In this document: positions 696 through 3,555 of the stretch, piece by piece | How the letters are laid out: each line of letters begins with the position of its first letter | Numbering within the stretch: position 1 is the first letter of the stretch | Source of the DNA: Salisapilia sapeloensis CBS 127946 | Lineage: Eukaryota > Protista > Oomycota | Reading direction: 5' to 3' | NCBI GenBank assembly: GCA_023334545.1 | Contig: JAADVB010000041.1 | Location: forward strand, 1-64,000 | DNA: 64,000 bases | Made by a program: the position numbers and the translations under genes | Notes under the pieces: generated by a model | The model's database searches: none | Told to the model about the DNA's origin: nothing | The model's input: only the letters and a program-made list of their open reading frames with translations

Positions 696-2491
696 TTAAG
701 TCTTGATAATCTGGTCCTCCAGTAGATACTCAAAGGTCGTGCCTTTGATGCCAATATGGTTTCCACCCGTGTAAAACGCATCCTTTTCGTCCGTCAGATT
801 TTTTAGTTCGCCATCAGCGAGTTTACTAGAATTACCATTAAATATTATTAGATCAGTACTTGGAATTGGCTTAACAATCTAAATGAGAAGCGTACATTTG
901 ACTCGTCATGTTCATGGCGATCAAGGTTTCGTTCATTTTCAAATTGGCGTTTTGTACATCCCTACATCAACCGGATATTAGAATAAAGCATTTATCGCTA
1001 GAAAACGACGTACAAATACTGGATCAGCGACGAAGTCATTTGGATGTCTAATCCAGAGTAGAATGGTAAAGTATCCTTCTGCAGCGTCTGATTCGCGATA
1101 ACACTAAAAGTATCCTTGAATGACATGACGTCCTCAATCGAAAAATACAAGTGGCAACGTACAATTTGGTCAAGTTCGTCAGAGCGATACTGTTTTCCAC
1201 GGATGGCTGAGGTCGGAAACCGTCAAAGGTGATGCGGTTGTTTGCTAGCTCTCTGTTTGCCGAATATTAGTTTCGTTTTCTCGTTTCATCAGAGCGATGT
1301 ACGTACAGGAGGACCATGCTTGGTATGATAGCTGTGACGCCTTGGATCTTGTTGTGGTTCAGTTCCCTTTGAGATATAGTTCGCTTCATTAGGATAGATA
1401 CAGTCGGATACAAATGAGGATTTCATACGCCGCATAGAGAGAATTCCAAGAACCACTCCAAGACAAAATGCCGTTCTCGTTTGCATTTCTATGGAAATAA
1501 TGAGATACGACTCAGGCCAATGTTGAAAATAAAGCGAGTACATTGTGGAGACATTGGGGCCAAACACTTTTGCGTGGTCGTTGTTCAATGCGTCAAGTTT
1601 GTTGTAGCTTATATCGCTACAGTGAGCAATACGTTAGGGCATGGCAGTCTCTATAAATCTAAACCAACGTACACGTCTTGTAGATTCTTACATGCTCCAC
1701 TAAAAGACCGCGAGTTCAGCTCATTCTTCGAGAGATCTCTACAGTATATTGGTGAGATTAATCCGATCCGTTTCAAGTCAGTATTGTTCTCGTACAAAGA
1801 TAGCAGAGTCTCGTAGTCGCATTTGAACTTATCCAGCTTGTTATCGCTGAGAATTCTATCACAAGCACATGAAGTAAATATACAAAGTACTAGGCAGGGA
1901 AAACGTGACAGGCATTTACAGATTGTGAAGTTTCGGCATTTTCGCATCAAAGGTAGAGATCTTGCTTTTGTCAGCATATCTACAATATCGAGTTAGTTTG
2001 TTATATAGATGATGTTGATATGGACATTGCGTACACTTCTTCGACGCTTTCCCAAGTTCCGGTTATCTTTTCCAGTCTACTTCCCGCGCAAGACCTGGGT
2101 AAACTATCGTTAGTTTGATCGACTGGAGAAAGGAAAATAATGAATTACAAGACTTGTAACTTGGGAAAATATTTTCCATCCAGACTCTTGAGTTTCTTCG
2201 CTTTGTCTAAAGTCCTGGAGAAGTTTTCTTAATTCAAGTTCTAGACATTCATTTTGATGCAACACCTACAGATAAAGAAGATCCGGAAATTTCTTCTCTA
2301 GCTTGGTGACGTCCGTCCCAGTCAGGTTCCTGTCATGGAAGTTAAATTCAGTTATTTGTACAAAGGCTATGCGATGGACTAAGTAGAACGAACAAGTCTT
2401 TCGCTTTCGTATCAATTTTATCTATAGCGCTGACATGAACGAGTGACAAGATCAGGCACAGTTGGACAAAAATGAGTCTCAGACTTTGCAT
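696..2491 (-). CDS. Secreted leucine-rich-repeat protein, 14 exons (about 346 aa if it ends at the TAA at 698-696; 3' end uncertain)
   Basis: Manual splicing: ATG 2491, exons 2491-2394, 2329-2270, 2214-2149, 2094-2035, 1979-1920, 1855-1796, 1738-1673, 1616-1542, 1488-1429, 1366-1307, 1252-1163, 1103-1014, 961-896, 825-696. All introns are GT..AG, 52-70 nt, phase 2. The joined frame is open: signal peptide MQSLRLIFVQLCLILSLVHVSA, then LRR units such as LILSDNKLDKF, LDLSKNELNS, VDISYNKLDAL, AELNHNKIQGV, LELANNRITF. Confidence 0.85.
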
Positions 2492-2526
2492 GTTGGAGAG
2501 TAGGCTTGTACGTTTTCAGAGCTTTG

Positions 2527-2541
2527 AAAGTGAAAATGAAG
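2527..2541 (-). promoter_or_regulatory. Oomycete INR/FPR-like core promoter motif upstream of the LRR gene
   Basis: Minus strand CTTCATTTTCACTTT about 35-50 nt upstream of the ATG; resembles the GCTCATTYYNCAWTTT consensus. Confidence 0.4.
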
Positions 2542-3555
2542 ATAGTCGTTCTTCCTTCACCACTTGATACAAAGGTAGCAATATGAGGTCTTACCGAACC
2601 TGTTGTATGATTAAATCATATATTAGTCGAACTTATAGCGAGCGTCATACGAGGTCCAAATTCCAGCATTCTCTAGCTTGATTGTTGTTTCATATGTCCG
2701 TACTACATGCTCGTCCGAAAAATATGCGATAACCAAAGACACAACGTTATATACGCTTTACTTTCGATTTAAGGGTGGAAGATGACATATGCAGTCTGCA
2801 AGCTGCTCTGGCGATACCGCAAATCCCATGAAGAATTCCTTGAATCACATCTCACCCGCTGTTGTGGCACGAAGCTACCTCGGATTGTTCACAGATTTTA
2901 GCATCTTCGAATGAATTTATTTTATAGGTCATTCACAGAATCATAGATAGCATTAAAATGATTTAGTACGTTACTATTGGCAACAAGTACCTTGATGATC
3001 TATCGTGTCATATAGACTGTGCCTTATGTATCTTGCTATAAGGAAAATTTATGCCCTGCTTATCTTCAAACCATAAAAATTCTCCATCCGAATATATTAA
3101 TAGTGCATTGGGCAACGTAGAAGGTCTATGTGCCGCACAAATACAAAGTGTGATCTAAAGCATATAAAAGCTTGGTCGGTCTGTAGAAACATTTACGACC
3201 CCATCGTATGGGCAAGGCGTTCTATCAGCACAAAGCATTCATAATGTAGCTTTATTGAGCAAGAACGGTCTAGCTGCGCATACTCGACGGAATTAAACCA
3301 AAGCACCTTTATCATACGAGAGTTAGAATCTTCTATAGAAAAAGCATGACGAACTATGTGATCAGTCGAGACAAAATGACGACCTGGTCAGTTCTGACAT
3401 GTGCTATCCATTTTCACTTGTTACTCCTTTGACTTCGCTACCAATGGAGGATAGTCACAAGCCACATGAAGCGAGAGTTAATACGAGCTGACTTATCCAT
3501 TTTATACCAAAACATAACAGAGGTGGAAACTTGGAATGTCTGATCTATGTTTGCT

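Follow-up and report, generated by a model that had tools for sequence, protein, structure and literature searches.

A gene hidden from ORF-based annotation

This locus raises two questions: whether a region in which the mechanical ORF list holds only short ORFs carries a gene, and whether the layout of that gene, with one LRR per exon and every intron in the same phase, is in use today as a device for diversifying a recognition protein. The locus lies at positions 2491-696, minus strand, of the window, by which we mean the whole 64,000-nucleotide stretch of Salisapilia sapeloensis DNA analysed here. Spliced exon by exon with a script, it yields 14 exons and 13 introns (Table 1), and the sizes of the internal exons match exactly those given in a preliminary description, which had proposed a gene hidden from the ORF track. 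All 13 introns run from GT to AG and are in phase 2, and the codon that each of them interrupts is that of the LxL core's first hydrophobic residue, so that the earlier claim of a uniform phase at an equivalent residue applies without exception. None of the 14 exons contains an in-frame stop, and the predicted product has about 346 residues. At the level of sequence, 2491-696 is confirmed as a genuine, intact gene that ORF-based annotation misses.

Two details of the model concern its 5' part. The donor of intron 1 is the sole GT that links exon 1 to exon 2 in frame. In the paralogue on contig C313 the in-frame candidate donors of the first intron are likewise GTT only (GTTGTT or GTTTAA), and the first-intron GTT donors of these two genes contrast with the GTA donors found at the LRR introns. 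Upstream of the ATG, the TCATTTT/CACTTTC stretch is what we take to be a possible core promoter of the oomycete type. We further note that retention of intron 6 would add 19 residues and keep the frame; an ORF at 1651-1977 (minus strand) runs through this intron, and a weak paralogue on C685 aligns over the same span with one TAG.

Table 1. Predicted features of the 14-exon LRR gene and its upstream region, in window coordinates.
Feature	Position	Strand	Length (nt)	Phase	Split codon	Remarks
INR-like TCATTTT, then CACTTTC	2533..2539	-				42-48 nt upstream of ATG
exon 1	2394..2491	-	98			ATG and predicted signal peptide
intron 1	2330..2393	-	64	2	L	donor GTTCGT, weakest of all donors
exon 2	2270..2329	-	60			LRR unit 1; one N-glycosylation sequon
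intron 2	2215..2269	-	55	2	L	
exon 3	2149..2214	-	66			LRR unit 2; 'DG..FP.L' type, also in paralogues
intron 3	2095..2148	-	54	2	L	
exon 4	2035..2094	-	60			LRR unit 3; 'G.W..(L/V)E' type
intron 4	1980..2034	-	55	2	V	branch-like CTAAC at -17
exon 5	1920..1979	-	60			LRR unit 4; 'MPKL' type, same place in seven paralogues
intron 5	1856..1919	-	64	2	L	
exon 6	1796..1855	-	60			LRR unit 5; canonical head; Cys retained in most paralogues
intron 6	1739..1795	-	57	2	L	in frame, stop-free
exon 7	1673..1738	-	66			LRR unit 6; conserved Cys, 'C-K-x-L' type
intron 7	1617..1672	-	56	2	V	
exon 8	1542..1616	-	75			LRR unit 7; paralogue counterpart 72 nt
intron 8	1489..1541	-	53	2	I	
exon 9	1429..1488	-	60			LRR unit 8; 'W.G.W..L' type
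intron 9	1367..1428	-	62	2	A	
exon 10	1307..1366	-	60			LRR unit 9; 'IP.(I/M)' type
intron 10	1253..1306	-	54	2	L	
exon 11	1163..1252	-	90			LRR unit 10, long variable part; 'F/Y-R-P-x-P' type; paralogues 84-117 nt
intron 11	1104..1162	-	59	2	F	
exon 12	1014..1103	-	90			LRR unit 11, long variable part
intron 12	962..1013	-	52	2	L	
exon 13	896..961	-	66			LRR unit 12; two N-glycosylation sequons
intron 13	826..895	-	70	2	I	
exon 14	696..825	-	130			degenerate last LRR head, short tail, TAA at 698-696

The exon chain exceeds chance expectation

Splice dinucleotides alone are uninformative at this locus: a loose search allows 34,560 phase-2 chains, and chaining for maximum length is equally uninformative. 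Because loose chaining admits tens of thousands of chains, we instead applied a cassette test that was untrained on the target gene and that asks for an AG, an exon of 3n nt, a GT[AG] donor, an open frame and an LRR-type head. This test returns a chain of nine consecutive cassettes at 2491-696, with chains of at most two in all other 1.9-kb tiles of the 64-kb window, whichever strand is read, and likewise of at most two in 300 dinucleotide shuffles. The composition of the parts agrees with the model, as GC content is 43.3% in exons versus 36.8% in introns and a branch-like CTAAY lies 17-26 nt upstream of the acceptor in many introns. Codon log-odds trained solely on twelve long ORFs nearby come to +0.27 bits per codon in the frame of the model, versus -0.56 and -0.19 in the other two frames, and are negative for the introns in all frames. 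For comparison, the neighbouring ankyrin ORF scores +0.17.

The 3' end of the coding sequence

The preliminary description had offered two 3' ends, a stop at 696 or further splicing beyond it, and the first is the better supported by both codon scores and paralogues. For exon 14 the codon score is +0.50 bits per codon when read in the frame of the model and below zero in the other frames. In the paralogues on C1106, C937 and C617, the last exon resembles exon 14 and has its stop inside that exon; the likeness consists of a D-G close to the exon start and a G-G or H-G preceded by an aromatic residue, at an identity of only 19-28%. Since stops fall in the similar last exons of three paralogues, the stop at 698-696 is favoured, and on these sequence comparisons the coding sequence probably ends at this TAA.

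It is unlikely that the coding sequence instead continues by splicing to more exons, for example to one encoding a membrane anchor, by way of a donor at about 777 or 729 and an acceptor at 622. GT and AG dinucleotides are present at the proposed sites, 695 nt of contig remain downstream, a further exon could sit past the contig end, and a search of 1.84 billion representative proteins yielded no genuine relative of the 42-residue last exon. Such an extension, however, requires an intron of at least 108 nt, compared with 52-70 nt for all the others, and its donors are weak (GTTTTA, GTATCT). The segment 621-442 is negative in each of the three frames, stop-free stretches within 1-700 score at most 0.27 bits per codon, and the downstream sequence holds no LRR cassette; the stop within the equivalent exon of the three paralogues likewise argues against it.

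The lone match of the last exon in the protein search was a bacterial tail-fibre-like repeat protein, found through a low-complexity Y-T-G-G...G-T-T stretch and rejected as spurious. A search of the species' own genome with the same exon returned the exon itself as the sole match.

The predicted product

According to the per-exon translations, an LxxLxLxxNxL core spans each junction, with N or an N-like residue at the N position in most units. The units are mostly 20-22 residues long, with 30-residue units encoded by exons 11 and 12, and are about 20-25% identical among themselves. A profile built from 56 exon units of the target gene and five paralogues matched 11 proteins in a PDB search (best E 1.9e-6), all 11 of them LRR proteins: designed LRRs, a bacterial Roco LRR domain, internalins, fibromodulin, decorin and LRRTM2. 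The core in each exon and the LRR-only matches of the profile together bear out the proposal of one LRR unit per internal exon. Pfam searches with single exons (19-42 residues) and with a 60-residue read-through piece, all very short queries, gave no LRR match, and the read-through piece had no relative among metagenome contigs.

Exon 1 encodes a basic n-region, a 13-residue hydrophobic core (Kyte-Doolittle mean over a 12-residue window, peak 2.8) and V-S-A ahead of the likely cleavage site. The C313 and C191 paralogues likewise begin with exons that resemble signal peptides, and the signal peptide that had been proposed for the first exon is supported by both the hydrophobic core with V-S-A and these similar exons. 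Beyond the signal peptide the predicted protein has no hydrophobic segment, and it contains seven N-x-S/T sequons. The gene model includes no kinase exon and the downstream sequence carries no coding signal; ROC GTPase and COR domains are absent after the LRRs, as the gene stops after the LRR exons.

We propose that exon 1 provides a signal peptide, that the 12 internal exons provide one short LRR of 20-30 residues each, and that exon 14 adds a degenerate LRR and a short tail. The product would be a soluble, secreted LRR-only protein. Judged by its domain type, it would fold as a curved LRR solenoid and might serve outside the cell as a non-enzymatic module that binds a ligand of the wall, the matrix, a partner or the host.

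An intron-dense gene in an intron-poor genome

The neighbours of the gene are long uninterrupted ORFs, which encode an ankyrin protein, a PLP enzyme, an EGF protein, an M13 peptidase and kinesins. Because these neighbours are uninterrupted, the 13 introns within 1.8 kb make this gene an outlier. The 14-exon LRR gene thus sits in an otherwise intron-poor oomycete genome, the assembly of which totals 22.4 Mb.

Twenty elicitin loci lie above the Pfam cut-off genome-wide, which supports the oomycete host that had been assumed for this DNA. Examples are found at C656:64252-64515, C512:30282-30548 and C471:1074-1334, and several of the loci are paired on one contig. Elicitins are not known outside oomycetes.

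A dispersed family with a common exon order

No near-identical DNA copy of the gene was found in the genome, since the DNA search matched the gene itself only. Candidate paralogous loci were found with a two-cassette DNA pattern and an 'MPKL-exon' pattern, which placed LRR cassettes on many contigs. Taken in bulk, the two-cassette pattern showed no enrichment (66 matches versus 73 in controls); the individual reading of its matches was informative. Twenty loci were modelled with a dynamic programme that uses our own scoring and admits phase-2 cassettes only. Seven collinear paralogues were recognised (C1106, C313, C876, C937, C191, C617 and C1211), and paralogue scores in the programme range from 86 to 155, versus at most 26.8 in 30 control tiles.

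The exons of these genes fall into types that follow one another in a common order. The first half reads 'DG..FP.L', 'G.W..LE', 'MPKL', a Cys exon and a 'C-K-x-L' exon of 66-75 nt, and the second half reads a 72-75-nt exon, 'W.G.W', 'IP.I' and two long exons. Cys is retained in exon types 6 and 7 across most paralogues. When exon order was tested for five paralogues, the summed similarity along the best diagonal exceeded all 2000 permutations (z of about 6-8), and the same test on two unrelated LRR genes gave no excess. Exon number varies among the paralogues at both gene ends. By these sequence comparisons, the gene is a member of a dispersed family with at least eight paralogues in the genome, whose exon types are position-specific and follow one order.

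Further LRR genes, on C56, C587, C786, C626, C656, C1154 and C1256, likewise carry introns at this position within the repeat. At C656:74500-80500 (minus strand, about 1340-3000), faintly kinase-like exons come after three good phase-2 LRR cassettes. The kinase reading downstream of these cassettes is weak and falls below the cut-off (Pkinase, E 0.07); this locus may encode an LRR receptor kinase that is split in the same way. The copies on C685 (about 2200-3300) and C847 (about 2360-2910) have only two to five good cassettes and may be decayed or diverged.

Several members lie on very small contigs, namely C1106 (3.3 kb), C937 (5.5 kb), C876 (6.5 kb) and C847 (7.1 kb), and others at contig ends, namely C313 and C617 (last 3.5 kb) and the target gene itself (first 2.5 kb). 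This placement of most members suggests that they occupy poorly assembling regions, whether repeats, clusters or divergent haplotypes.

Inherited layout or device in current use

We consider it highly probable that the locus is an intact 14-exon gene for a secreted LRR-only protein, that it belongs to an old dispersed family, and that its layout is inherited rather than a device in current use. The family shares exon types in the same order, and this marks the layout as an inherited footprint, which would have arisen through old duplication of exons and exon blocks followed by duplication of whole genes. The similarity of exons within a gene peaks at an offset of four exons in the paralogues on C191 (12000-17500, exons 1-8) and C1211 (37000-41000), and reciprocal best exon matches pair exons 2 and 6 and exons 4 and 8 in C191 and exons 3 and 7 in C1211. 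In sequence terms, this four-exon periodicity fits an old tandem block duplication. Tandem or direct DNA repeats are absent from within the gene, no recent duplication of exons was found, and comparison with five paralogues showed no re-ordering.

The opposing proposal, that the exons serve today as frame-neutral cassettes which are skipped, duplicated or swapped to yield variable recognition proteins, as proposed for the ROCO genes of brown algae, is in our judgement very unlikely. Its premise holds: with internal exons that are multiples of 3 and introns all in phase 2, the frame survives whichever of the internal exons are kept; paralogues do differ in exon number, the periodicity in C191 and C1211 points to block duplication in the past, and alternative splicing of LRR exons has been reported in Ectocarpus (PMC11378527). 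Against it stands the conserved exon order. Paralogues do exist, but re-ordered exons, which the preliminary description suggested looking for, do not appear in the five tested. Position-specific residues (Cys, Trp, MPKL; the long exons 11 and 12) mark exon types that are not interchangeable, the mutual identity of the units is low, and exons of 60-90 nt are uneven compared with the uniform 72- or 90-nt arrays of shuffling systems. With an order that beats all permutations, a gene without DNA repeats and a genome without a near-identical paralogue, the claim of a working diversification device is not supported. Regulated exon skipping or intron retention, by which secreted LRR proteins would come to differ in repeat number in the course of infection or development, seems to us similarly improbable; if true, it would parallel the alternative splicing of brown-algal ROCO genes. 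We give still less credence to the reading of the locus as an unexpressed or decaying member of the family. The C685 and C847 copies do yield partial chains only, the intron 1 donor is weak, and the gene lies 696 nt from the contig end, but 14 exons without an in-frame stop, GT-AG borders throughout, a codon signal as strong as that of the neighbouring genes and the retention of conserved position-specific residues all argue for an intact gene.

The gene family does not amount to a new way of generating diversity. ORF-based annotation overlooks the gene, and catalogues of secreted proteins for this species are likely to lack an LRR family of at least eight members, which stands out by its intron density in a genome poor in introns. 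The match in intron position and phase with plant LRR kinases contributes a stramenopile case to the debate over an ancestral or a convergent origin of the layout.

Comparison with known one-LRR-per-exon systems

A non-exhaustive literature search found no published description of a one-LRR-per-exon layout in oomycetes. The parallel that had been drawn with genes of plants and brown algae holds (PMC3050792, PMC3341825, PMC11378527). In rice LRR kinases, the introns of the LRR region fall in phase 2 within the first Leu codon of xxLxLxx, often leaving one-repeat exons of 72 nt (PMC3050792). The oomycete gene resembles plant LRR receptor kinases (rice group 5; ERECTA or SERK type) in having one LRR per short exon, and the position and phase of its introns are identical to those in rice LRR kinases for all 13 introns (PMC3050792). 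The two differ in exon size, as plant exons are mostly 72 nt and encode a 24-residue plant-type LRR, whereas those described here are 60-90 nt and encode 20-30 residues (PMC3050792). They also differ in what follows the LRRs, which is a transmembrane segment and a kinase in the plant proteins and neither of these in the oomycete one (PMC3050792).

The LRR exon genes of brown algae are the source of the diversification idea. ROCO and LRR-only genes of Ectocarpus and Saccharina consist of 72-nt phase-2 LRR exons and show shuffling and alternative splicing (PMC3341825, PMC11378527). Like the gene described here, they belong to a stramenopile lineage, carry one LRR per exon in phase-2 symmetric exons and include LRR-only genes (PMC3341825, PMC11378527). 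Their exons, however, are a uniform 72 nt, in contrast to the 60, 66, 75 and 90 nt found here, and they carry ROC-COR domains that the oomycete gene is without (PMC3341825, PMC11378527). The brown-algal genes also show recent shuffling, intronic relics of non-coding LRR exons and positive selection (PMC3341825, PMC11378527), none of which was found for the oomycete gene.

In Tetrahymena, 90-bp LRR exons number in the tens of thousands and are bordered almost exclusively by phase-2 introns (PMC6564038). This ciliate shares with the oomycete gene the arrays of LRR exons, the phase-2 introns and a junction residue built from two exons, but its exons are exactly 90 bp and form young, species-specific expansions, unlike the small, old family with uneven exons described here (PMC6564038). 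The vertebrate glycoprotein-hormone receptors also resemble the oomycete gene in having LRR ectodomain exons with introns all in phase 2 (as cited in PMC11378527); these exons form the ectodomain of a GPCR, and the relation is one of repeat type only. The layout of the oomycete gene is thus one already known from plants, brown algae and ciliates.
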